Shown in pieces: positions 1,802 to 36,499 of a stretch of DNA of 64,000 nucleotides. The notes beneath the pieces were generated by a model. That model was not told where the DNA came from. It saw nothing but the letters and a program-made list of their open reading frames with translations, and ran no database searches. The DNA comes from Trichosphaerium sp. ATCC 40318 (lineage: Eukaryota; Protista; Tubulinea). Location of the stretch: contig JALMLS010000320.1 of NCBI GenBank assembly GCA_038496445.1, forward strand, positions 310,001 through 374,000. Reading direction: 5' to 3'. Within the stretch, counting starts at the first letter, position 1, and every line of letters begins with the position of its first letter. The position numbers were made by a program, and so were the translations under genes.

Positions 1802-2767
1802 ATGTCGCTGGTACATCTTCAAAGTGAAAAAAATATTCCATCTCTTCAACACCTCCCACCTGAGATACTTACAGAGATATTGAGTAATTTGGACATGCTG
1901 GAGCGTATAAGCACCACGAGAGTTTGTCATTTATTAAATAACATTATTCGCAAAAACCTTGGATTTGACTGGATAAGAGTGACAGAACCAGCAGATTGTA
2001 AAGCTCTAAAAGGCAGTCCACTTCTTAAAAATACCCTTATTTTTTGTTACATAGAACTATCAGAGGCAGACTATTCTTGTCTTTCTGGTGTTACTTCAAT
2101 ACACCTCGCATTTTCGAAAATAACAGATGCAGGTGTACTTGCTTTGCTTGATGGAGACAGCCATACCATCAAAGACATTGATTTGACAAACACACTAATA
2201 ACAGATGTTTCACTAAAAGCACTCAGAGGTGTAAACGTGATTGACATTACAAATTGTATGAATATCACTGTTGAAGGTATTAAGCACCTCAAAGATGCAC
2301 GTGATATTTCAATTGGGGATCCTTTGGATTCGTGGTTTCAACACCTCTCTAATGTAAACAAAGTTACCATAAATGGTGGGGAATCTGTTTCAGATGCAGG
2401 AATCAAAGCATTGCTACATGTCAACTATCTATGTTTGAGATTTTGTCCAAAGATTACAGGCTCAGGTTTGATGCACATGACCAATCTCACAAGCCTCAAA
2501 ATCCTGCAATGTCCAAAGATTACCAGTGTAACGTTGGTCAGTCTTATAAACCTTGAACTGGACAGGTGTGATAATATTACAGATGATGGTTTGAGAAGCT
2601 TGGTCAATCTTGAGAAACTGTCAATCGTTGATTGTTCTAATATTACGGATGGTTGTTTAATGCACTTGAAATCTCTCTGCGAGGTTTTCACCAATATGGA
2701 AGAAAATATCAGAGAAATAGAAGCTGAGAAATTAGGTATAACTTTTGAATACGTACATTCTACATGA
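1802..2767 (+). CDS. Intronless F-box + leucine-rich repeat (AMN1/FBXL-type) protein
   Basis: 321-aa ORF with N-terminal LQHLPPEILTEILSNL...RVCH F-box and repeated LxxCxxITDxG LRRs. Confidence 0.85.
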   Translation: MSLVHLQSEKNIPSLQHLPPEILTEILSNLDMLERISTTRVCHLLNNIIRKNLGFDWIRVTEPADCKALKGSPLLKNTLIFCYIELSEADYSCLSGVTSIHLAFSKITDAGVLALLDGDSHTIKDIDLTNTLITDVSLKALRGVNVIDITNCMNITVEGIKHLKDARDISIGDPLDSWFQHLSNVNKVTINGGESVSDAGIKALLHVNYLCLRFCPKITGSGLMHMTNLTSLKILQCPKITSVTLVSLINLELDRCDNITDDGLRSLVNLEKLSIVDCSNITDGCLMHLKSLCEVFTNMEENIREIEAEKLGITFEYVHST

Positions 2768-9290: not shown

Positions 9291-9363
9291 GGGTGTGTGG
9301 CTTAGGCGGGAAAGCGGCCACTTTCAGTGCGGCAGGACGTGGGTTCGAACCCCACCTCACCCA
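9291..9363 (+). tRNA. tRNA with UCA anticodon (opal-suppressor-like; not tRNA-Sec architecture)
   Basis: 73-nt cloverleaf. Acceptor GGGTGTG/CTCACCC has one U-U. D stem GCTT/AAGC. Anticodon stem GCCAC/GCGGC has one A-C, loop TT-TCA-GT. Variable loop AGGAC (5 nt). T arm GTGGG-TTCGAAC-CCCAC. A73. Confidence 0.8.
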
Positions 9364-10334: not shown

Positions 10335-11079
10335 ATGGATATTTACGCGCAAACAACGATAAAACCGTACAAGAATTTTTAAAGACACATAATCAAAACG
10401 AAACACCTACGTTGGTATCAATGAGGCTCTCAGAAGATCCTATACCAGTAGAACAAGTAAGAAAAAGCACCACGAGTCATAATAACGTCTTTTTTTTGAA
10501 AGTTACGAGAAGCAGCTCAAAATACGCATCAAGGAGATCGAGTGCACATTAAGAGTATTGAACCTGATAAAGGAAGCACTGCAGGTGGCCAAGTGGTTAA
10601 AATAAAAGGTCAACATTTCCCACGAACGCCATTGTCTTGCAGTTTTGGATCTGTTATTGTACCGACTGTTTATGTGTCAAACACAGAGGTATTGACATTT
10701 AAAGTATTCTAAGTACAAACACAGAGTTATCTAACATTCGCCAACAGTTGACTTGTACTACACCATCACACGCAGCTGGTCCAGGTGAGGAATACTTATT
10801 TGTCATGATTTTTTTCGTGACCTGTTTAGCAACTGTGGAGCTTGCCTGGCGTGGCGTCAAACTGACTAATGATGATAAAGTATTCACCTTCATAGATCAG
10901 CAACAATGTGCTAGCATGGGAATTGCACGTGATTTCGTTTTGATCAAAGTCAAATAAACACTAACTGGTTTTTTCGTTAGGGCGTCCCTTCTGGTCCTAC
11001 AGCTTTAGGCTACGACTGCCAAGCTACATGCACTATCACCACTGATGTTTTACCAACAGCAACACTTGATAGGTTTTGA
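10335..11079 (+). CDS. IPT/TIG domain protein, multi-exon
   Basis: LRVIEPDKGSTAGGQVVKIKGQHF...CSFGSVIVPTVYVSNTE/LTCTTPSHAAGP/ATVEL...FTF matches the IPT/TIG pattern. Last intron is GC-AG (10925-10980). Confidence 0.75.
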
Positions 11080-11326
11080 GAAATCCTTTTTGAAGAATGC
11101 TTAACAAAACTACCTCAAATAAATAGGTTATTGTACAAATAAAGAACAGAATTATGACGTATTTCTTTTCACTCTGCGTGGTTAGTTCAGGCCAAGCTTT
11201 ATAAATAGCAAGAACTATCAGTCGTTCCTCTTTGAGCATGTTTCTCAAATCATCCATCCACGCGTGATGTTGCACTTTCTTCACATTGTCAAAGTCAGTC
11301 TTTTTTTGGTGTTTTTTCTTGAATCA

Positions 11327-14300
11327 ATGGAAGAGTTGGAACCCATTAAAACCTTTGTAGAGAGGTTTTCAAACTGCACCAAGACCTTAGCGTCACTACA
11401 CAAGGTGAGAATAGTAAAAATAATTTAGATCTTAACTAAACAACGTAAAAGTTCTACCTTACTCTCAATGGTGGCGTAGAAGCAGGAATAATAGCAGTCG
11501 ATAAAGACGCAATTCGAAGGCTTTTTACAGGTGATTTTCTCGCTTTAAACCGCCGTTATTTAACATGTTAGGCTTCGCCCTACTATATGAACAAACATGG
11601 GAGTTAATTCATACATATAAAGTACTTTTAAGCGTAAACGCATTAGAATCAAACGTTACAACATTAAAACAACAGGTTCGTATAACAGATCACGTGGGTA
11701 AATTATTTTTGAATTCTCCTTTGTATTTTACCAAATCGATAATCTTCCAAGGTGAAGACGCGCGTGTCAACGTAAAGGCGTATTTTTTGTCCAAAACTTT
11801 TTCGATTTTTTGATCACGTGATCGACAAAAAAAATTAAAATTCATTCTTATTTTAGACGCAAAATCTTGTTGTCTTTTATGAGGCATATATGAAGCAAAT
11901 TCCACAACGTGAGAGATTTCTTGAAGAGCAACAAAAGAAAAATACACCACTGGCACAGTTTATGGAAAGTTGTTCTGGGATGAGTCAATTCTCTGGTATT
12001 GAGTTTAATTGGTGTCTCTTCAATGCGCCTATATATAACATTCAACCATTCCCACAAATCCTGATGGTACGTGCAAAGTCTATACTCAACTGCGAGTGCT
12101 TAGTAGTCATAAGGGGTACCTGGAGAGCCTGGAAGATGCAATCAACAAAATAAAAGAAGAGGAAGAGAAAAAGAAAGCAGAAGAAGCTGCAAAAGCAGCA
12201 AAGGAAGCAGAAGAAGAGGCTTTAAGGAATAGGATAATACCTACTAAAGAAGTAGAGGCTAAACCTCTTCAAGATAAATCACAGAATGTCTATGAAGTGT
12301 TATTCTTCAAGGTTAAGCTAGGCTACTTTTAAAAAAAACAACCTGACGACTGTATCTAGAATGATTCTCTTAAACAATCAGGAAGGCGATTCATACATAG
12401 CGGACCATTATATCTTATGCAAGATGAGATTATGCAACCTATATATGCAGCCCTATATAGTAACATACTTGCTTACTCTATCACGGTAGGCCATCAAATT
12501 ACGTTGTAGTTTTTTTTTCTGGTTTATGGAAAATACTGAGCACATTTTTAACCAACTGGCAATCATGTGGGTGTTAAACATCAGCGTAGGATGATCCCAA
12601 AGATGTCAAAATTTTATCTTTGGCTGGTATCAAAGGCGTCAGTATAGCAACAACGAAACTAGGACAAACTGTGTACACAGGATTCAAGGCAAAAATAGGT
12701 GCATCTGATGCTATAACATTTTTATGCGATCCTGAACAAGCAAATGTTGCTGAGTGGATAACTTTCTTAACAACAGCACGTGATAAAGTGTTAAAAGTCC
12801 AAAAACGTCGCTCCATATTCAATATTGGAGGATCTAAAAAAGTTAGAGAGTTTGGTCTTCTTGAAGGTAAACACTTTATACTAAAAACTCACTTCATTGT
12901 TATTCTTATCATTGAACAAGGTGAAATGCCACCACCTCCATCAAGACGCCCTGGGCAACCTCAAAAACGAACCTTTGGTTCTCTGAAACGTTCTTTGTAC
13001 GTTGAAAAAACACTTTCAATACTTTTTTCCATGCACTCATAATTCAATAAGGACTACACGCATTTCGCGTCCAAAAGGATCTTCTAGTGGTACGTTGTAT
13101 ATTGTTTTCTTACATAACTGACATGATCGAAATCAGATTCCTCACCTCGACCCCAAGATCAGAATTCATCCTCAAAAGACATCAAAGAAGAAGCTGAAGA
13201 TACGCCAATACGCATTGATACACCTCCACCACCTCCTCCGCCTTCAACTTTACCTCCTGAACCACCAAAACAAAGCCGAAACTCTATATCAAATAAAGAT
13301 ATAAAACCAAAGAGACCTGATACAAAGGCACCTCCACCACCAAGCCCTAATAAAGCTGCACCTCCACCGCCGTCTGCACCAAGCGATCCATCTGTACCTC
13401 CTCCACCGCCACTTCCATCAAATGAATCAGGCCCACCTGCTCCACCACCTCCACCGATGAGTGGTGGACCTCCCCCACCGCCACCCATGAACGGCGGACC
13501 ACCCGGACCTCCGCCCCTTGGAGGGTACGTGGTTTGTGTATTATACCTTTTGACATCCCATGTAGACCTCTAAAGCCAAAAAGAAAGGTCTTGAAACCAT
13601 TCAATTGGGTTAAAATGACAGATGCTACTGGAACTGTATTTGAACAAGAAGAAGGTGAAGATGATGGAGATATTGAGGTGGATTTTGCTGAAATTGAGAA
13701 GATATTTGCAGCGTCTGCGCCAAAGAAGAAGATTCCGAATCCAAAACAAGGTAACATAAAATTTGCGTTCTTATCCAATACTAAGATGTAATCAATAGCG
13801 AAAAAGAAAAAGACAATAACAGTTGTCATTGATGGTAAAACAAGTAATAATTTATGTACGTTGCTATTTTCAAAGGAAATCTGAGAAAGGGAAAGAAACC
13901 AAGATAACGTTGGCTTTTTTTGGATTTTCTTGCATTTTTTTTTGACTTGTGACATTCTTTTTAGCTATTTTCTTATCAAGGAACTTTAAATCGGTACGTC
14001 ATAATAGTAAACAAACATGAAATGGTTCAATTTGAAATAACAAAACCGTATGTGAAAGTTTAGATCACACCAAAGGAAGTATGTCAAAAAGTTCTTCAAT
14101 TTAACGAAGAAAGTTTCACACCTGCTCAAATATCGCTTATGCATTCTTACATGCCAACAACCCAAGACGTAACTATATCTATCTATTTCATACAATATTT
14201 ACTAAACTAGCTTGATACACTTCGGATGCACATGGAAGGAAACAATGGTGATACAACTAGCTTACCTCTTGCAGAAATTTTTTGTGTTCAGGTATGCAAT

Positions 14301-15336
14301 TATCAACAGCCATTGGTTTGCCGCCTGTACTGACATCTTTCCAGCTTCTTGAGTACCCACAAATGATACCCAGATTGAGTATAATGAGATTTCTATCTGA
14401 ATTTGGTCCAAAGAAACAAGAGCTTGAGCATGATTTGCATCTTCTTGGAGAAGCGACAGAAACACTTAAAAATTGTGATAAGTTCAAAAAAATATTGAAG
14501 GTACATTTGTATATTGAATAAGGTCTTTATTTTCCCTATTTGTAGGTTATCCTCAAGATGGGAAATTGTTTGAACGGTGGAACTTACAGAGGAAGAGCAA
14601 CAGGGTTTAAGTTGACTTCACTTAAAAAGGTATTTGAAAAGACGATTTACCAAAAAAGTAGTAAAATTACTGCTCTCAAGCCAAAACAAGTTTTTAAACA
14701 CGCATGTATATCGTTTACACAAGTGACTGTTTCGAAACAGTTTAGTCTACCTTTGCTTGTTGGAACGTTTTTCCTATTTTATTCTGGATTTTGTTTGTAT
14801 TCTTATTTTTTCTTGCTTGTAGCTCTCTTCAGTTAGAATGACTTCTGCAAAAGGATCACTCCTATCTTACTTGAAACAAGTATTATCAAAATCAGATCCA
14901 TCTTGCCTTGACTTTAAGGAAGAGCTAAAAAAACTTGATGGTGGAACACGTGTTGATATTCGGAATACACGAAATGACATACTCCAATTATCTCAACAAC
15001 TTAAAGAATTACCAAATGAAGATGATTTAACACCATTAGATGATAAAGACACCGAAATATTGGAAGGAAGAGTATTCGTATCCTCAAACAAAAAAACTTG
15101 ATTCTTTTTCTTCTTTTTTTCTGTTTTTTCAAACATTTTGACATTTGACTCTCAAGCCTGCATTACAAGGTGCTAGTGAAGAAATAGATACTCTTCAGGA
15201 AGATTATGAACGAGTTGAAAGTATTTACTCTGATCTCGCCAAGTTTTATGGAGAGGATCCAAAAGAAGTGAAACCGGAACATTTTTTCAAATCAGTTATT
15301 GCTTTTTTACAAGTTCTCTGTTCAGATGTCAAATAA
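11327..15336 (+). CDS. Formin (FH1 poly-proline + FH2) with N-terminal DH(RhoGEF)-like and PH domains
   Basis: Poly-Pro FH1 at ~13220-13520. FH2 motifs LKPFNWVKM, VDFAEIEKIF, GNCLNGGTYRGRATGFKLTSLKK and AKFYGEDPK...FF. N-terminal exons resemble DH (IRRLFTG...VGKLFL...FYEAYMKQ...LAQFMESC...LFNAPIYNIQPFPQIL) and PH (SGPLYL...ITFLC...EWITFL). Confidence 0.85.
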
Positions 15337-15447
15337 ATGCGATTTTTTGAGAAACACGAGGTGGCTCGGACGCTGCAAAGGAAATTTATTTTCACAACAC
15401 TGAGTAGTTAAATGGCATAGAGTAAAGAATATTTCTAGGAAAGGGAC

Positions 15448-17261: not shown

Positions 17262-18137
17262 CGTTTTAGGAGAGTTGTTGCTTCTGTATTGCTCTTTAAT
17301 CTTTTATTGTTTTTTTTGGCTAGTTTTCCTTCGTTTTGTGTGATTTTTCCGCTTTGCCTATCGCCCGCTAGAACATAAAAGCAACCGTTTGGTTTGCAAA
17401 TTTCCCTGCCCGCAATCATATCATGCCCACACGTCACGTGACTATAAAATGATTAACATCTATACGAATGAAAAAAACTGTTTGTGTACTAAATGGCGGG
17501 GTGTTTGTTTGCCTCGAAATCACTTGCTGAAACATTCGTTTGGTACGTTTTTTCGACAAAAATACAATGTTTGGGTAAAAAATGGGTAAAATACAAAAAC
17601 GGTTAAAAACACGTGCCTTTAGTGTAGACTACAACTAACTCAGCGCTAGTAGCGCTAGTACATACGTCGTTTTAACTAGAACCAGGGCAATTGTGTATTT
17701 TTCCAGGGCCATATGTGCACAACTCACGTCATTTTTTAGGTCATTCGGTTTTGATATTTTGATGCGATGGATGGTCTGTATTTAGTGCCCTTCTTTTTAA
17801 ACTGTCATTCGACATCAGTTCACACTCGGTACTACCCCTAAGTGTATTAATACGACATGAGCCTATCGTAAAAATAACAAGATGGACTGGGAACCAGGAG
17901 CTCAACATCTGTTTATATTCATAAAATACAACTTATCGAGGATTTTTGGCGGTAGATTTAGAAAACCCGCTCACTTCAAAACTATACTACAAGCTAAGGG
18001 GCATACTTGGAGATTCAAGTTACACATGGCAAACAATAAAGAGCCAAGCCCATTTTAAACAAAAATAAAAATATTTTTTGAAGCAACTCAAATAGTTTAC
18101 TAAAACTTTCTTTGTTTATTGATCTCACAAAGTTGTT

Positions 18138-21100
18138 TTAAAAGTCATCCATATCTAACTCATCTCCAAATAACGCACAACACTCATCATCCTCTGACCA
18201 AGACTCAGACTCAGACTGGGAAAGCAAGATTAGTAAAAAATTGATACTAAAAACTTTTACTGAACGAAAAATTGTTGGTACCATTTCCATTTCATCAACA
18301 AATGCACTCCTGCGGGCCAAAAGGTTGGTAAGTGAACCTATACTAATCTCTTCTTGTTTTGATGCAGGCTTAGGAGGTACAGGCTTCAGTTTGGCACTTT
18401 TAAGTCCATTAAGCAATGCATCTAATTCGCTTTGTTGTTTGTTGTTAATGTTGAAGTTGCTTGTACTATTACTTCCTTCTTGTTGAGGTGACTCTTCAAT
18501 CTTCTTACGTATACGTTCTATAGCTGCTTGAGCCTTTTTCGTCTTTTCAGAATCAGGTCCGAGTTGAGAAGAAAAGATAAAGTAGGCTTGTTCGAAATGC
18601 GGAAGAGCATCTTTTGGATCACCTTTTAAAAAAAAAAGTTAACCAATTGACTCGAAAAGTGTTCTCATGAGACCACCATAGCTGCCATCATTGAGATGCG
18701 GTACTGGTGTAAAATATAGTACAAGGGTTTTTAGAAGTTAACAATAACACAAAGGCGTACCTGTCTTCTCAGTGAAGGAAGCCAAATTATAAACAACTTG
18801 TGCGGTACTTGGATGCTCTCTACCGAATACCTTATCGTAACAATACAACGCCTTATCGTATATTTTCTTTGCTGTTTCATACTCTTTAAGGTTATAATAA
18901 AGAATAGATAAATCATTCAAAGTGATACAAACAAACTGATGATCAGTACCAAGAAGAGTCTAAATGGAATTTAGAAATAAAACAAAAACCAATCAGTTCT
19001 TGTTCAAAAAAAACCAAAGAAATAAGGAAGGCGCCAATGACGCTCTACAAATAAAACTGGATTGTTTAAAACTTATTCAATAATTTATAATTGCTTTTTT
19101 TACGAGTTTTGTAAATAATTATCATACTAGCACATCACGTGACCAACGTTTTGTTCAACAAAAAAAAAAAGGTTCATGCAAATGACAAAAAAACAAACTA
19201 AAACAGCAACGTACAAGAATGATATCCAAGGCTCTGACATACAATGGTACAGCTTCTTTTAGTTTCTTTTGTTGCTGTTTAACACCAGCTGTATTCATGA
19301 GAGTAGTTGCAATATCCATATGGACTTTACCATAAGCTTTCTCCATGATAGTAATAGCTCTGCAAAAAAATATTAGTCAGAAAGGGACAAAGCAGAGATG
19401 TATGGTTTTTGTGGAACCATGAGTACACCTCATGCTGAAACCACAATATTTCTTATTTCATCAAAGAAACGAAGGCAATCCTACATGGAAAAAGTTCTGT
19501 GATGTTGTTAACGTACTGATTGAAGTATCGAAGTGCTTTATTGAAATCTTTTCTTCTTTGTTCCATTGCACCCAAGTTAGAAAGACATGATGCATATTCT
19601 GGATGTTGATCACTATTAAGAGCCTTTCGTATAGCAAGAGATTCATTGTATAAAGCTTCAGTCTTTGGAAAGATACGTTGACGAAGATACAATCCGGCGA
19701 AATCTAACAATAAATAAGTCAGATAGATAGGGTTTTTCTCGTTTTTTTCGTCGTTTTTGCATACCGTTGAGGGTGTATGATACTTCTGGGTGGTTAGTAC
19801 CAAGTGTTGCTTTCATGATCTTGATAGCTTCTTCAAAAGTTTTCTCAGCAAGGTCATATTTACCCTTTAAAAAAGGCATCAATAATTATGGGTTTTAAAG
19901 TAAATGTTCACCTGTTGCAAGTACGTTGATGCGAGAGCACTCAATGCCATGCCGTAGTTTGGATGAGTCTTACCAAGAATTTCTTCATTAATTTCTAAAG
20001 CTGTCTCAATGACTTTCAAGGCATCATCTAGTTTTGTCCAAAGAATATACAAATCACCAAGGTCTCTTTAAGAAAAAAAGTTAAGTTCAAGAAAAAACAG
20101 TTTCCTTTCTTTCTTGGTTTAAAGACACAACCACAAAACGATTAAAATAAAGTATGCTGTTACTGTCACAAAATCAGAGGATCAAATGAGACATTGACAA
20201 GGTCAATTCCATCAAGTCTTTCTTGGAAGTTTTGTTTTCAAAAAAAAAAACCTGTTGTACAAGCGTACTTTAGTGTCTTGGCAACTTTCGGATGTCGAGG
20301 GCCATTAAGAGCTTCTCGTGTTTGTAAAGCTTTCTTAAACATTTCTTCTGCTTCAGGGTACTTTCCTTGACTCTGTCTCAATAACGCAAATGTGTTGTAC
20401 GTCTCAGCAACTGGTTCACTCGTTTCACCATGAACACGAAGAGTTAATCTTATCGCCTTGGAAAGCGTCTTATCAGCTTCATCATATAGCCCTTGATGGC
20501 GTTGAACTTTACCCAACTCTAAAGGGAATAAATTAAAATACAACTGCATAACGAAGAGTGACTTACCATGTTGAATTGAAGCTTCTTGAGCTTTATCTTT
20601 TGGACCAAATCCATCTTTACCAAAACGCTCAAGCATTGCCAAAGCCTTGTTGAGATGATTTACAGCAGGGTAGAAACGCCCTGTATCTGCGAAAAGTGAA
20701 GCTATACGTGTATACAATGTAATAGCCAACTTGCACGTTTCTTCATCGCTATGCATAGAGCTGAAAAGTCTTATTGCCTTACTAAACAACGTATAAGTTG
20801 GTTTGTATTTGAATCTCTTCTCCGTACGTTAATACTCCTTCTGCACCTGCGAACTCTCCTACATCGTATAAGCACTCTCCTATAGACAGATATACAATCA
20901 TAGACGCCTATAAAGGTATGTAAGACGGTAAAATCGAGGTTAGATGAGCGAACCTTTGGAGACAATTTTTTCTTGTTGGTTGTAATTGTGAAACCTCTGA
21001 GAACTAATTTTTTGCTTGCAGGAGGCAAAGCTCTCCATATATTGAATAACTCCATTTTAAAATCTTTATGGAGAACAGTGAAATAATCAGTCTGTATTAA

Positions 21101-24100
21101 AAGCTTGACTATCTTATTATAGTTCTTCAATGCCATATACTGATGAGGTAACTCTTCACATTGTCGACGAACATCAGCGTTCTGATGAAAAAAAAGTTAA
21201 CATAAAAAGAACCCAAATGTGATGGAGAAGAGACTTACTTTGTCTAGTTCAAAGAACGCAACAAGTTTTGATATATAGTGTTCTTTACGCCCTTTAATGT
21301 ATCGAGATTCCACAGCTTGCCTCATGTAATCGTGGAAGAAAGTCAAATAACCGTTCCTACATGAAGAATCAACAACTTGCTTCAAAAAACCCTAGTAGCA
21401 ATACCTGCTAACAAGGCTCTCCTCCATTGCATTATATAGAGGCGCCCAGACCGCATGTGGTACACTTACAAGTCCAAGGAGTTCTGTTTCAGTAAGACCT
21501 CTACGACTAGCCCAAACTAGACTGAGAATATTACCAACAAGTCCCTTGTTCTACAAAGAAAAAAGTAAGAGAAGAGTTTTACAAAAACATGACGTACAGT
21601 TTTTTCAAATTCTCGTTCTAAACGCGCAAAGACCATCTGGAATAACTCTGGAGGAGTTCTAGCAGTCAAATAGTTTTGTAATACTTGATCTAACTCTTCA
21701 AAAGTACCAAACACTCTAAAATAAAGGTAAGTAACATAAACCACAATACCATTGTTTCATGGGTACCTCATTTCTTCCAAAAGTGTCCTTAGAAACAAAG
21801 GATTTCTACAAGGTGGAGCAGACGCAATATACATGATTTGGCTCTCAGTAAATGATTTACCAAATTGTTGCATGTAAGTCTTTGCAAAAGATACTCGTTC
21901 ATGCTCTTGTAGAGGTTCTACTCTGACTTGTGGCCATTCCCTTTTCCCCAACACTTCCTGACACCTTATTAGCAGTTAGTCAAAAACAACGGTTACTAGA
22001 TGAATAGTGTACCTTCCAGGAAGCGTTGAAACAATAATACTCACTCCTTGAGGTAATTGAGAAGGTAACCACTCTAGTGCATGGCTATTTTCAGCTGGAT
22101 TGAGCTGATTCAAGGCATCCAAAACAAGTACCAAACCGCTGAAGAGATTTGTTAGAAAAGGAACAGGTAGCAGTTTCGTAGGTTTTGTGCTTACCCACGC
22201 GATCCTGCCTCGGCGAGATACTCTGGGAATACTCTAATCATCTCTTTTGGATCTGTAGGCACAGGTGAATTCATTTTTAAGTGCTGTGAAATCTCCCATA
22301 ATACGCGACGCATCAAATTAGTTAATTCTGAAGAACTAGATGTTGCACCAATGTAATGAGCAATAACTAGTTTATCAACATTATGTTGCGCATAGCGATG
22401 AGACCAGTTAGCAGTAAGAGCACTCTAATAAATAACAATAAGAGAAACTGACGCCACTAACTTAACTTGTGTGTACCTTTCCACTGCCACTTTCACCAAC
22501 GATAACACCTGGTCTGCCACTGTTGACCAGTTCATCAAGGCGATGAAAATACTCAGCGCCACCTACGTATACACGTGATCGTGATGCCTCAAAGGCTTCA
22601 TGAGCTAGTATCTGGCGTTCCATTTGAGTAGGCGCATCACTATGAAGACTAGTTAGCACTTTTGATGTGAAACAAGAAGACGTACCCAAGTGGAAAGTCA
22701 GCATCAATCAGTGTTGAGAGTTTAGTAAACATATCGTTGCCTAGCGAATGAACGTCGCTGTAAGATGTTACATCAAGACCACTTTCATTTAAGGTTTCTT
22801 TGAGCTCATTCAGCTTTGTACGCTTATAAGCAGGCTCGCTCTATTGTTCTTGTTAGTGACAAAACTAGTGATTGTGTTCGTACAGATGCATTGTTGCTGG
22901 TTCCTTTTCTTGTGAAGAATAGCGAACGCTCAGCAGTATCACTGCTTGGATCATTCAAAGTAGCATGTCTAACTTCCAGTTCAGTAACGCTGCGATCTTC
23001 ATAATCCCTTACCTGGAAGAAAAAAGGAATATTAGTTACATACAAACTCACTCTAGTTTACTAACCCATGGGAATGTAATAGCGGCTTTCTTGAGGGTTT
23101 TTTCAAGCAACGGGTCTTTTTGGGCTGGTACTTTACTCCACCCATAACGTTCTCCAAGCATGCACACAAAGTAAGGTCTGCACTTATCAACTAATAATAC
23201 ATCAGATTGAAGGCATTCGAGCTTTTTTTCAAATGAATGTACGCACTCTCGTTAAGGCAGATATCGATCGTGTTGCCTTCATTAGTTTGCTCAGATGTTA
23301 TCCCCCAACGTAAATCAACAGGCGTAAAGAATACACCACGCTCACTGCAAAATTTTCGTAATTTTGGAAAAGTTTTCTAAGGCGAACAAACGGTAAGTAA
23401 CAAACTAAACAATTGTGAATCTTACAGATATCAAGTGTTTCCGCTCTGATTGCATGTCACGAAAAGTAGACGATACAAATAATCTCACTTTACGATCTGT
23501 ACGCTTCTTTTGCCTAAGGTACACTGTTAAAACAAGCTCAAACAGACATTTAAAAAGGTGAACGTCAAGTTTTAAAATTTCAGTGAAGTGAAGAATAAAA
23601 GGAGAAACTTGACAACGTGGTCACTTTTTGCTCAAATCTACTCAACGAGGCAAATGTAAAATACGCATAAGGCCAAACAAAAAGGGCACTAAGGTAACTT
23701 TTGGAAGAAGTTGTGTTGTTTTAAAATACGCACTTGTTGCTGAGCGTAGAAAATTGAGAGTAGTCCATATGTGGTATTGTTGTAGCGTCAGAGAGAATCT
23801 GAGATGCCGAGCTGTAAGCTAATAACCTCTTATTGTATTCCTAAAAGGATGATGAGCGAAAACAATCCACACTAAACAACATACATCTTCAGTTATAAAT
23901 CCTGAAGCGTAAACATCCTTTAGCGCTTGTTCATCATTCTCCAAGTCATAAGCAGATCCTATAGTGACACCAGGAGCATCCCATGAAATGGGTTCTATTT
24001 GGTCAAAACCACAAAACCGCAAAGACTGTCAAAACGTTAAACGGTCAATTCAATGAAATTAATCTGAGGGTCTTGGAGCGTACCATATCAACGCTTGATT

Positions 24101-24913
24101 CGCCTGTAAGCCCGTAACCAATACGCGTGTCATTGTCACCAATCTTAGCTAATAACGCTTCCAGCTTTTTCAAATCTGCTTCGCCCACTTTAACAGTTTG
24201 CGTTGGACCTATTCCAAGGGTATGAGTATATGGTTATGTACATTGTAAACGTTTGAATTTAAAACAGACTATTTTGAGTGGTAGGCGCGCCAACTATGTT
24301 GTCAATGCGTAAATTTTCGACAAAGGCACGGCAGGGCAGCATTGCGAAGGTTAAAGAGTTTTAGGTTTTTTTACGTTAAACACCTTCTAAATGTGCCTCA
24401 CGCAGGTGTCCCACTTGCAAATTTTCGACATAGGCAGTGCAGAGCTTCATTTGAAAAGTTCAAGAAGATTTTATGGTACACCTTCTACATCTGCCATGCG
24501 CAGGTTTTCAGCGAAACTGTACGCCATAAATGACATGGTTGAGAGTTTGTGAAAAGTTTTGTTTGTCCGTTCAAATAAGTGTCAAAGTATTAACTTACGC
24601 GTAAAAAACTCAGCGTCAAGAGGCTCAGCGTATACCTCATCCAAAAGAGAGTCAAGTTCATCGGTTATGTTTGGTTGTATTTGTTCTTCTACATACGTGA
24701 AGTTATCAAAGCTTTGAGCCTCTACATAGGAGAAAGAGCATTCCTAAAACAGTTTTTAGCAAAAACTGCGTTTTACTCCACTGACATCAAAAGTATCCAT
24801 TGACTGCTCCTCAACGAAGCTGAAATCGCAATCCTCCTTGACATTTCAGCAACTTGTCACGGTCTTTGTTTTAACAGAAAAAAACAAAATAAAAAACTAA
24901 ATCGTACAGACAT
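18138..24913 (-). CDS. Nephrocystin-3/TEP1-like DUF4062-NACHT-TPR protein with C-terminal WH2-C-A (VCA)-like tail
   Basis: VRLFVSSTFRDMQSER and VDLRWGIT (DUF4062). Walker A GESGSGKS and Walker B LVLVLDALNQL. Many kinesin-light-chain-type TPRs (HPKVAKTL, HPEYASCLSNL). C-terminal LLNGLKSAKLKPV, LTNLLARRSAF and SESESWSEDDE. 5' end approximate. Confidence 0.82.
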
Positions 24914-30842: not shown

Positions 30843-30915
30843 ATTGAGCTTAAGTCAATCGCCTTAACCACTTGGCTACTCTCCTGTTGATAGGAGAGGC
30901 GGGATTCGAACCCAC
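30843..30915 (-). tRNA. Circularly permuted tRNA-Leu(UAA): 3' half upstream of 5' half
   Basis: Minus strand reads GTGGG-TTCGAAT-CCCGC-CTCTCCT-A [TCAAC] AGGAGAG-TA-GCC-AAGTGGTTAA-GGC-G-ATTGA-CT-TAA-GC-TCAAT. The 7-bp acceptor and 5-bp anticodon stems are perfect, with a Leu-type D loop and A73. Confidence 0.85.
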
Positions 30916-34129: not shown

Positions 34130-35408
34130 CTAAATTCCAAGTAAATCATCGTCCATGATAGCCTCTGAAGATAGCTCCTTGTTTAACACCTTTGATATTT
34201 TTGAACAACCTTTTACGTTAATAGTATGAGCACTATCTAAAAGTTTTCTAACACTCACATCAGTAACCTTAATACATCCACTTATGTCTATTGAACAAAC
34301 GCCGGTTAAGCTCAGAAACCCCTCCATCAGTTACTTTACATCCTGCTATATTGATCACACTTACTCCTTTAAGCGCTTTAAGACTCTTATCTGTAATCTT
34401 TGTACCCCGCAGATCAACAGTATGAGCTCCTTTGAGATGACATACACCCTCATCAGTTACTCTAAAACATCTCTTTAAACTAATTCTTTGAACACCTTTA
34501 AGTGCTTTAACTCCTTCATCCGTGACTTCATTACATCCACTAAGGTCTATAGTATGTACACCTGATAGTTCTTTCAAACCAGTATTTGTTATAAGATAGC
34601 ACTCTACAAGAGATATAGTATGAACGCCAGAAAGAGACTTAAGACATTTATCAGTAACCAAAATACAATGTTTAAGCGAGATCTTATGTACACCTGCCAA
34701 AGAACATAATCCTTTATAGTTCGTTTTCCTACAATAACTAAGATCTATTGTATGCACTCCTTCTAATTGACGTATACCAATGTACGTTATATCATAACAA
34801 CGTGATAAATTTAAGGTATGAACATTCTTTAAATGAGAAATACCTTGACTATCAACCTTCGTTCTTTCACTGTTACTTCCATTTTCCTCATTATGTAAAT
34901 CAACAACCTTTGATCCATTTAAATAAGATATTCCAGGAGATGTAATTAAAGGACAATCTCTTAGAGTAACAGTATGAAAGCCTCCTTGATTGCTAAAGTA
35001 AAGTAAAGTTTTGTTCTTTAAGTTTTTACATCCAACAAAAGAAATAGTATGTACGCCAGCAAGTGCTTTAAAACCCGTATGCGTTATTCTATTACAACCA
35101 ATAAGATGTATAGTATGTACTCCTGCTAGTCTACATAATGAACGGTCTGATATAGTACTGTAAGTCGTTATTTTTGCTTTTTTAAGTAATCCTGCTTTTG
35201 TAACTCTTCTTATATCTTTTGAACTCTGTAACTTTATGTTTGGCGAGGAAGTATATCGCAGGTTTTCTAATACGATTCTCTTTAGTAGCCAGCAAACACA
35301 AACAACAGAGCCCATAGTTTCAGTATCAGTGACATCATATAGTAGTACGTGCTCTATTATTTCAACTGGGAGATCTGTTAACGCCATTTCCGCTGTATTT
35401 GATTCCAT
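34130..35408 (-). CDS. Intronless F-box + LRR protein (GVHTI repeats) with a single frameshift near 34320
   Basis: LTDLPVEIIEHVL F-box and ~12 LxGVHTIxLxxCxxITDxG repeats. The repeat continues in another frame (FLSLTGVCSIDISGCIKVTD) after a GGGG run. Confidence 0.8.
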
Positions 35409-35804: not shown

Positions 35805-36499
35805 CTATTTATTTTCTTTGGAGTCACTTTTTTTTTTTCTGTTTTCGATTATGTTACCTTTAATGTCCAATAATTTTTGCTCTCCCTTGATTTTACCATT
35901 CTTATAAGTATAGTTTACCTTTAACATAATTTTGTTGTTGTTTATGTTGATTATTCTGATACCATTTACTAGTCTATCTTCAACATAATTGCATTGTGAT
36001 CCAACATGGCTATTCTCATACCACTTACACTCGCCATGTTTTTTACCATTATTATAGTTTAGATGCGCTTTGGGCTGACCGTTCTCATACCACGATTTAC
36101 ATTCACCGTGCCTGTTGTCATTGAAATAATTCAAATGAAGTTTGAGCTGACCATTTTGAAACCACATTTTATAATCGCCTTGCAGTTTACCTTTAACATA
36201 CCGACAAAATTCTTTTAATTGGCCATTGTCATACCACTCAGAACATTCACCTTCAGCTATTCCTTTTTTATAATTGTCGTAATACTCCACTTTTCCGTTG
36301 TCATGCCACGTTATCCTGGGACCTGTTATTTCATTATTCTCATTCAACCAATGCCTACTAATTGTGTATCCATTTTTTGTTATATTTACAGGTGTAAATT
36401 CTACACTAAGTAAGCAAGCTATCTTTGCAGAAACAATCTAGTACTAGTACGTACCTTCAACTGGACGAAAATCACCCATTTGTCTTCGCGAAGCACCAT
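35805..36499 (-). CDS. MORN-variant (YwqK-like) repeat protein
   Basis: Repeats of GxxxxWYxNGQLK...YxxGKxHG. A probable short first exon splices in frame. Confidence 0.75.

Follow-up and report, generated by a model that had tools for sequence, protein, structure and literature searches.

A STAND-TPR gene of Trichosphaerium sp. ATCC 40318 with a C-terminal tail resembling a WH2-Central-Acidic module

Described systems and the Trichosphaerium locus

Class I Arp2/3 nucleation-promoting factors (NPFs) of the WASP family (WASP, SCAR/WAVE, WASH, WHAMM/JMY, WAWH, and WAML; PMC3298513) end in a WH2-Central-Acidic (WCA, or VCA) module, in which a WH2 helix with an LKxV motif is followed by a short linker, an amphipathic C helix with a basic doublet, and an acidic end bearing Trp and Phe. 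VCA binds Arp2/3 with about 180-fold higher affinity once it is dimerized, and Arp2/3 offers two sites for NPFs (PMC3762189; PMC10944109); an oligomerizing switch would therefore be a natural regulator. Here, we describe a gene of Trichosphaerium sp. ATCC 40318, encoded on the minus strand of a 64,000-nucleotide stretch of contig JALMLS010000320.1 (assembly GCA_038496445.1, positions 310,001–374,000; hereafter, the window), the product of which combines a STAND NTPase and tetratricopeptide repeats (TPRs) with a tail resembling WCA. The features of the WASP-family module listed above have counterparts in this tail, partial ones in the case of WH2, and control by clustering would suit the two-site activation of Arp2/3. 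Unlike the WASP family, the protein has neither WH1, SHD, WAHD, or WMD nor polyproline; its WH2 is divergent, its Trp lies far from the end, its scaffold is a STAND NTPase with TPRs, and no sequence homology is detectable. To our knowledge, the well-studied Arp2/3 activators are all switched by GTPases, lipids, SH3 adaptors, or regulatory complexes, with WCA clustering as the shared last step. A STAND NTPase achieves clustering by itself, once triggered by a ligand.

An amoebozoan repeat scaffold with a verprolin-like and acidic Arp2/3-activating region is already known, namely Dictyostelium CARMIL (PMC2150732). CARMIL of Dictyostelium and Acanthamoeba (p116/Acan125; PMC2150732) is similar to the present protein in joining a large repeat scaffold to a short verprolin-like and acidic stretch; however, it has leucine-rich repeats (LRRs), a capping-protein-binding region, and myosin-I SH3 sites, while an NTPase switch and a clear C helix are lacking. 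The STAND proteins nephrocystin-3 and NWD1 share with our protein the P-loop NTPase, the winged-helix-like segment, and the TPR_10/TPR_12 repeats, a likeness seen in weak matches to HTH_NWD1 and NPHP3_hel and a sub-threshold one to TPR_NPHP3; the N-terminal DUF4062 and the WCA-like tail are additions of the present protein. Plant NLRs with integrated decoys also combine a STAND receptor with a non-canonical terminal module resembling a pathogen-targeted host protein, but their NTPase belongs to another clade and their repeats are different, and a decoy role would be purely hypothetical here. Kinesin light chain (KLC; PMC6214655), with its cis LFP-acidic motif and its W-acidic and Y-acidic cargo motifs, is comparable to our protein, in which one polypeptide contains KLC-type TPRs and an acidic stretch with Trp and Leu-Phe. 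In KLC, the motif is N-terminal to the TPRs and reads LFP, whereas in our protein the stretch follows them, and its binding would be hypothetical. Known ligands of KLC TPRs are peptides with a Trp or Tyr between acidic residues, Y-acidic motifs at a C-terminus, and the LFP-acidic stretch of KLC itself, which acts in cis as an autoinhibitor (PMC6214655).

The initial annotation of the locus, made from the sequence alone, could not place this architecture in any described NPF family, and the literature agrees with it: our literature search revealed no paper combining NACHT with WH2 or with a nucleation-promoting factor, and the survey of the WASP family mentions neither TPR nor NACHT (PMC3298513). 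Both modules are known, while the STAND-TPR/WCA junction appears to be undescribed.

A STAND-TPR protein and its C-terminal tail

The window DNA is AT-rich and eukaryotic, with 37% G+C and very short introns. One intron-rich gene occupies its minus strand from about 23770 to 18100. The coding region was modeled at 18138–23768 with 24 exons, including the stop, and codes for 1243 amino acids counted from the first Met ahead of DUF4062; the introns are 43–255 nt long. Contigs of four public sequencing runs were aligned to positions 18050–24000 as transcript evidence. Spliced pieces were present in all four runs and displayed 15 joints, all of them GT..AG on the minus strand; the contigs thus derive from processed RNA. 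All introns within the TPR array were supported by contigs. Seven more introns were deduced from open frames and GT..AG splice sites, and contig ends match several of them (e.g., a loose end at 21967 and a piece beginning at 22424). A single expressed gene, therefore, encodes the succession DUF4062, STAND NTPase, TPR, and tail.

Domains were sought by Pfam scans run exon by exon, on single exons, and these recognized only DUF4062, STAND NTPase signals, and TPRs. DUF4062 extends over three exons (23066–23513), where PF13271 gave partial matches in the correct order with E-values of 1.8e-4 (profile positions 1–21) and 7e-3 (positions 51–68); their scores of 22.1 and 17.0 bits are each, taken alone, under the gathering score of 24.7. 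The P-loop STAND NTPase core (21767–22639) contains a Walker A motif, GESGSGKS, at 22422–22497, which crosses an intron, and, in the spliced model, a Walker B motif, LVLVLDALNQ, at 22105–22134. Exon-wise matches in this region were weak: nSTAND1 with an E-value of 0.012, and HTH_NWD1 (0.017) and NPHP3_hel (0.063), the latter two marking a winged-helix-like segment that follows the NTPase (21405–21550). Neighbors of the exon 21769–21963 in the ESM Atlas were of mixed STAND families (AAA_35, NPHP3_N, NB-ARC, nSTAND1, and NACHT) and serve as leads only. A PDB search with one NTPase exon gave no useful match.

The TPR array, of the kinesin-light-chain/nephrocystin-3 type, is spread over ten exons (18495–20907) and is certain: TPR_12 and TPR_10 matched with E-values of 7.8e-27 and 2.7e-15. 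TPR_NPHP3 also matched (1.4e-10), although at 41.5 bits it was far below the curated cutoff of 100. The best solved structures were the TPR domains of KLC1 and KLC2 (E-value of 2e-25), including those solved with W-acidic, Y-acidic, and LFP-acidic peptides. Judging by these profiles, the order of domains is probably DUF4062, STAND NTPase, and KLC/NPHP3-type TPR. The initial annotation had called the protein a NACHT-TPR protein; the TPRs, the Walker motifs, and the weak STAND-type matches bear this out in part, but Pfam NACHT (PF05729) was not matched in the single-exon scans, and "STAND NTPase of the NWD1/NPHP3-like type" seems to be the better term. Of the three profiles that the initial annotation had proposed for a HMMER check, DUF4062 was matched in part, by the two sub-threshold exon matches, while those of WH2 and NACHT were unmatched in these scans.

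The tail is encoded by the last two exons. Exon 18282–18622 codes for the last TPR helices, a Ser/Asn/Gln-rich linker, the WH2-like stretch SELDALLNGLKSAKLKPV (18378–18431), the spacer PPKPASKQEE, a Central (C)-like amphipathic helix ISIGSLTNLLARRSAFV (18297–18347), and the residues DEMEM. With the latter begins the acidic (A)-like end, DEMEM|SESWSEDDECCALFGDELDMDDF, which is split by the last intron (18282–18296 and 18141–18209). All of these peptides are on the minus strand and in one frame. Because a single exon encodes the last TPR helices together with the WH2-like and C-like stretches, the latter do not belong to a separate transcript. The acidic exon was joined to them by an 805-nt contig of run X2, which spans the A exon (18103–18209), the W/C exon (18282–18620), and the end of the TPR array (18759–18959). 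The claim of the initial annotation that the tail is part of the same mRNA as the TPRs was thereby confirmed, for the A exon by this one spliced contig. The stop codon TAA (18138–18140) is followed, 18 nt past it, by an AATAAA polyadenylation signal (18115–18120), and the spliced contig terminates at 18103.

The last intron proved to be 72 nt long (18210–18281, GT..AG; joint in the same X2 contig), and not 66 nt as annotated initially. The transcript, therefore, reads EMEM|SESW instead of EMEM-SESESW, that is, with one TCTGAG (Ser-Glu) unit fewer, and the acceptor is located 6 nt further downstream. The tandem TCTGAG at the acceptor permits the alternative intron of 66 nt, and the SESW reading may reflect either a splice choice or a strain without one TCTGAG unit. 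As the intron contains no stop and preserves the frame, a transcript retaining it would still encode the acidic end.

W, C, and A follow each other in canonical order at the extreme C-terminus, within the last 75 residues. We compared W and C with published patterns, which are based on 1080 WH2 and about 900 C regions (PMC3298513); likeness to the tails of WASP and WAVE was judged by these patterns. The WH2-like stretch (LLNGLK-SAK-LKPV) agrees with seven of the ten pattern positions, namely the three helix hydrophobics and K, L, K, and V. In the C-like stretch (ISIGSLTNLLARRSAFV), Leu 6 and Leu 10 match the register of the pattern, while the first hydrophobic residue is displaced by one position; RR and the closing F/V are present. 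The stretch fits most of the published description of C, which comprises three large hydrophobic residues separated by three positions (i and i+4), a basic doublet or triplet, and a final hydrophobic residue. The W-like to C-like gap, as annotated, comprises 10 residues. In WAVE and N-WASP, it is about 15–16 residues. The acidic end, taken as the last 29 residues, contains 13 Asp/Glu, no Lys/Arg, one Trp, and two Phe, one of which is the final residue. By its composition, it fits the A pattern of the WASP family fully; Trp together with F/Y in the acidic region is reported to be common in WASP and WAVE (PMC3298513).

Structure prediction is consistent with this layout. From a single sequence, AlphaFold2 predicted two TPR helices, disorder, a helix over KQQSELDALLNGLKSA, an extended low-confidence segment LKPVPPKPASKQEEISIG, and a helix over GSLTNLLARRSAFVDEMEM. 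The W-like helix comprises query residues 60–75 and is followed by extended LKPV, while the C-like helix comprises residues 94–112 with a pLDDT of 80–85. The three nearest named clusters in the ESM Atlas all bear Pfam WH2 (PF02205); they are C-terminal fragments, one of them WHAMM-like. The resemblance of the tail to WCA is one at the level of motifs only, the likeness consisting in order, spacing, and predicted helices. These also uphold the W-C-A order proposed in the initial annotation, although its WH2 element is a partial one with respect to the pattern, remains without a Pfam WH2 match, and has no polyproline in front of it.

Possible function of the tail and alternative explanations

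On the basis of sequence and structural modeling, we tentatively interpret the gene product as a STAND-gated Arp2/3 activator with a divergent WCA tail, an interpretation that in our estimate falls somewhat short of an even chance. The flexible C-terminal tail would represent a divergent WH2-Central-Acidic module attached to a STAND switch with a TPR sensor array. In the resting monomer, the tail would be weak, or it would be masked, possibly through insertion of its acidic-aromatic end into the TPR groove. Binding of a ligand to the TPRs and nucleotide exchange would drive oligomerization, as in other STAND proteins, and oligomerization would gather several WCA tails. The clustered tails could then occupy both CA-binding sites of Arp2/3 and supply actin monomers, so that a branched actin patch would begin where the signal was sensed, e.g., at a phagosome or around an intracellular microbe. 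We infer the binding of actin and Arp2/3, the masking of the tail, oligomerization, and an immune role, and the same applies to the activation of Arp2/3 and the caging of microbes put forward in the initial annotation.

In a more specific version, a ligand-gated STAND oligomer would itself be an NPF, and its acidic-aromatic end would, in addition, lock the KLC-type TPR groove in cis; we consider this possible, if doubtful. The resting state could be locked in cis by ESWSEDDE and ALFGDELDMDDF of the tail, because KLC-type TPRs bind acidic-aromatic peptides, among them their own LFP-acidic stretch in cis.

If true, a ligand-gated STAND NPF would constitute a new class of NPFs and a new kind of NLR output, and the union of STAND with WCA would be the shortest known path from sensing to actin nucleation. 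It would also be an NLR-like output other than cell death, protease, or nuclease. Such a protein would bear on the caging or expulsion of intracellular bacteria in a phagocytic amoeba and on the diversification of immune-type switches before animals and plants.

Several observations weigh against the tail being a genuine WCA module. The WH2-like stretch misses three of the ten pattern positions, having N and G at positions 3–4 and P in place of the second basic residue, and its helix-to-LKxV linker has three residues instead of the usual 4–5 and is devoid of the usual hydrophobic residue. Trp is located 19 residues from the C-terminus, compared with 1–3. A proline-rich tract is absent upstream of the WH2-like helix, where the region is Ser/Asn/Gln-rich; the sole proline cluster, PVPPKP, is located after LKPV. 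The family-specific N-terminal domains (WH1, SHD, WAHD, and WMD) were not found in the exon-wise Pfam scans. The scores of the ESM Atlas clusters (0.79–0.83) qualify them as leads only, and the joint to the acidic exon (18209|18282) is known from a single contig of a single run (X2 record 9).

Searches for relatives of the tail point in the same direction. Pfam WH2 (PF02205) gave no match to the tail or its parts at E-values up to 10, though HMMER filters may lose weak short matches. No WASP, WAVE, or WIP chain was found by phmmer in the PDB with the tail as a query. We failed to find a relative of the tail among 1.84 billion representative proteins with HMMER and the 113-residue W/C exon, among metagenome contigs, or by a word-index search with the 160-residue read-through tail, which gave 48 candidates, none of them significant, and covers only proteins of 88–280 amino acids. 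Orthologues beyond near-identical strains were not found in these searches, and any conservation of LKPV, RR, and W would be putative.

The same searches gave a few matches that were rejected. Matches of the tail to CheC/CheX in the PDB had E-values above 0.2 and were considered noise. Two HMMER matches with an E-value of 3e-4, bacterial-type EAD7-NB-ARC-TPR and TPR-CHAT proteins, aligned only with the TPR helices, and there was no homology to their NTPase. A metagenome locus was spurious, as the match was interrupted by stops in an AT-rich, bacterial-looking contig.

The only related variant at hand was that of a closely related strain, organism B, the transcripts of which (runs X2 and X10) are 1–2% diverged from the window. 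In the body of the gene (NTPase and TPR exons), 14 differences were found, 13 synonymous and one replacement. The gene body is under strong purifying selection, since nearly all of its differences are synonymous. In the tail, by contrast, all five changed codons alter the residue (S to I, E to Q, T to E, L to I, and R to C), and the last three of these replacements are located in the C-like helix, where RR becomes CR. The WH2-like stretch was unchanged in organism B, and the hydrophobic face of the C helix was retained. Per residue, the replacement rate of the tail is about 70 times that of the body; with the T/L/R cluster counted as one event, the ratio of replacement to synonymous changes is 3:0 versus 1:13 (Fisher probability of about 0.006). 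The replacements in the tail are compatible with relaxed constraint as well as with an arms race. In genuine NPFs, no part is better conserved than the C region (PMC3298513); the pattern of replacements does not fit this and thus also counts against a genuine module.

Five base differences between the window and organism B are packed into 16 nt (18314–18329). Of six codons for the C-like helix, they alter three, one of them at all three bases (ACC to GAA). This cluster has the look of positive selection, of a complex mutation, or of a short conversion tract. The contigs of two window-type runs both end at 18313.

Such a rapid change is what would be expected if the resemblance were due to chance in a relaxed low-complexity tail, i.e., if a disordered acidic C-terminus mimicked WCA without any actin or Arp2/3 function and drifted fast. 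We regard chance resemblance as a serious if unlikely possibility. It is in line with the roughly 70-fold faster replacement in the tail, with the failure of any profile or sequence search to recognize the tail, and with the lack of detected orthologues; moreover, very many windows were examined, so some motif triples are to be expected. It is harder to reconcile with three independent motifs, correctly ordered and spaced, at the very C-terminus of an expressed protein under constraint, with predicted helices that fall exactly on W and C, with language-model neighbors that are WH2 fragments, and with a WH2-like stretch that is the same in the variant of organism B. In 200,000 shuffles of the 110-residue tail, the W pattern occurred in 1.8e-4, the C pattern in 3.3e-3, and the A pattern in 4.8e-2 of cases, and the ordered triple in none. 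These frequencies are an optimistic bound, since the patterns were devised post hoc, with the tail already known, and a great many windows were scanned. The clustering of replacements in the C helix of an otherwise constrained protein would also fit an arms race, as expected for an integrated decoy: the tail would imitate the WCA of the cell's own WASP/SCAR, and a pathogen effector that targets host WCA regions, by binding or by modification, would act on this bait and trigger the STAND switch. Amoebae are natural hosts of actin-manipulating bacteria, which speaks for such a role, and the tail would then be a protist counterpart of the integrated decoys of plant NLRs. We nevertheless consider a decoy improbable: DUF4062 is the only output domain recognized, and five substitutions are too few to separate positive selection from relaxation.

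It is likewise improbable, in our opinion, that the tail has no Arp2/3 role and is a ligand, in cis or in trans, for KLC-type TPRs. Its acidic-aromatic end (ESWSEDDE and the following ALFGDELDMDDF) would then be a W-acidic or LFP-acidic-like peptide, the docking of which in its own TPR groove would mean autoinhibition, and in kinesin light chain, transport. The closeness of the array to the TPR domains of KLC1/KLC2 makes this explanation attractive, but Trp is flanked here by Ser and not by Asp/Glu as in EWD, and only the A part is accounted for, not the WH2-like and C-like helices. Docking of this kind is, besides, compatible with a STAND-gated activator and does not exclude it.

Provisional 5′ end and neighboring genes

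The N-terminus of the STAND-TPR model and its start codon are uncertain and should be regarded as provisional. The two 5′-most introns (23514–23733 and 23841–23884) were also deduced from the sequence and are less certain than the other seven. Within the 220-nt intron deduced ahead of the DUF4062 exon, a 157-nt contig of run X2 (23562–23718) runs colinear with the genome and makes the start codon uncertain. This contig may stem from an unspliced precursor or an overlapping transcript, or it may represent an alternative 5′ exon. Possible extra 5′ coding exons on the minus strand (23885–24233) are open frames joined by good GT..AG sites and absent from the contigs shown, and good splice sites connect open exons up to about 24845, with further candidates at 24585–24845. 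No Pfam match was found for the possible 5′ exons. The candidate exons at 24585–24845 encode two similar acidic-aromatic stretches, DCDFSFVEEQSMDTF and ECSFSYVEAQSFDNFTYVEEQ, and their membership in the STAND gene is uncertain.

A 73-nt tRNA gene with the anticodon UCA is located at 9291–9363 on the plus strand. ARAGORN assigned it to tRNA-SeC, while Rfam recognized it with the general tRNA model (53.4 bits); it is of ordinary length and has no long variable arm, and it may be a UGA-reading tRNA. The STAND-TPR gene, located in the same window, ends with TAA. At 30843–30915, ARAGORN and Rfam at the gathering threshold reported nothing; neither is designed for permuted tRNAs.

The window is gene-dense. 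Two single-exon LRR genes with F-box-like N-termini were found at 1802–2767 (plus strand) and 34269–35408 (minus strand; LRR_6 with an E-value of 5e-12), and a MORN-repeat gene at 35805–36347 (minus strand; MORN_2, 6e-19). A multi-exon formin gene (10400–15400, plus strand) and the STAND-TPR gene are arranged tail-to-tail, the former ending about 3 kb from the 3′ end of the latter. FH2 matches were obtained at 13534–13791 and 14558–14700, with E-values of about 4e-6 each, and a proline-rich FH1-like stretch is present at approximately 13160–13490.

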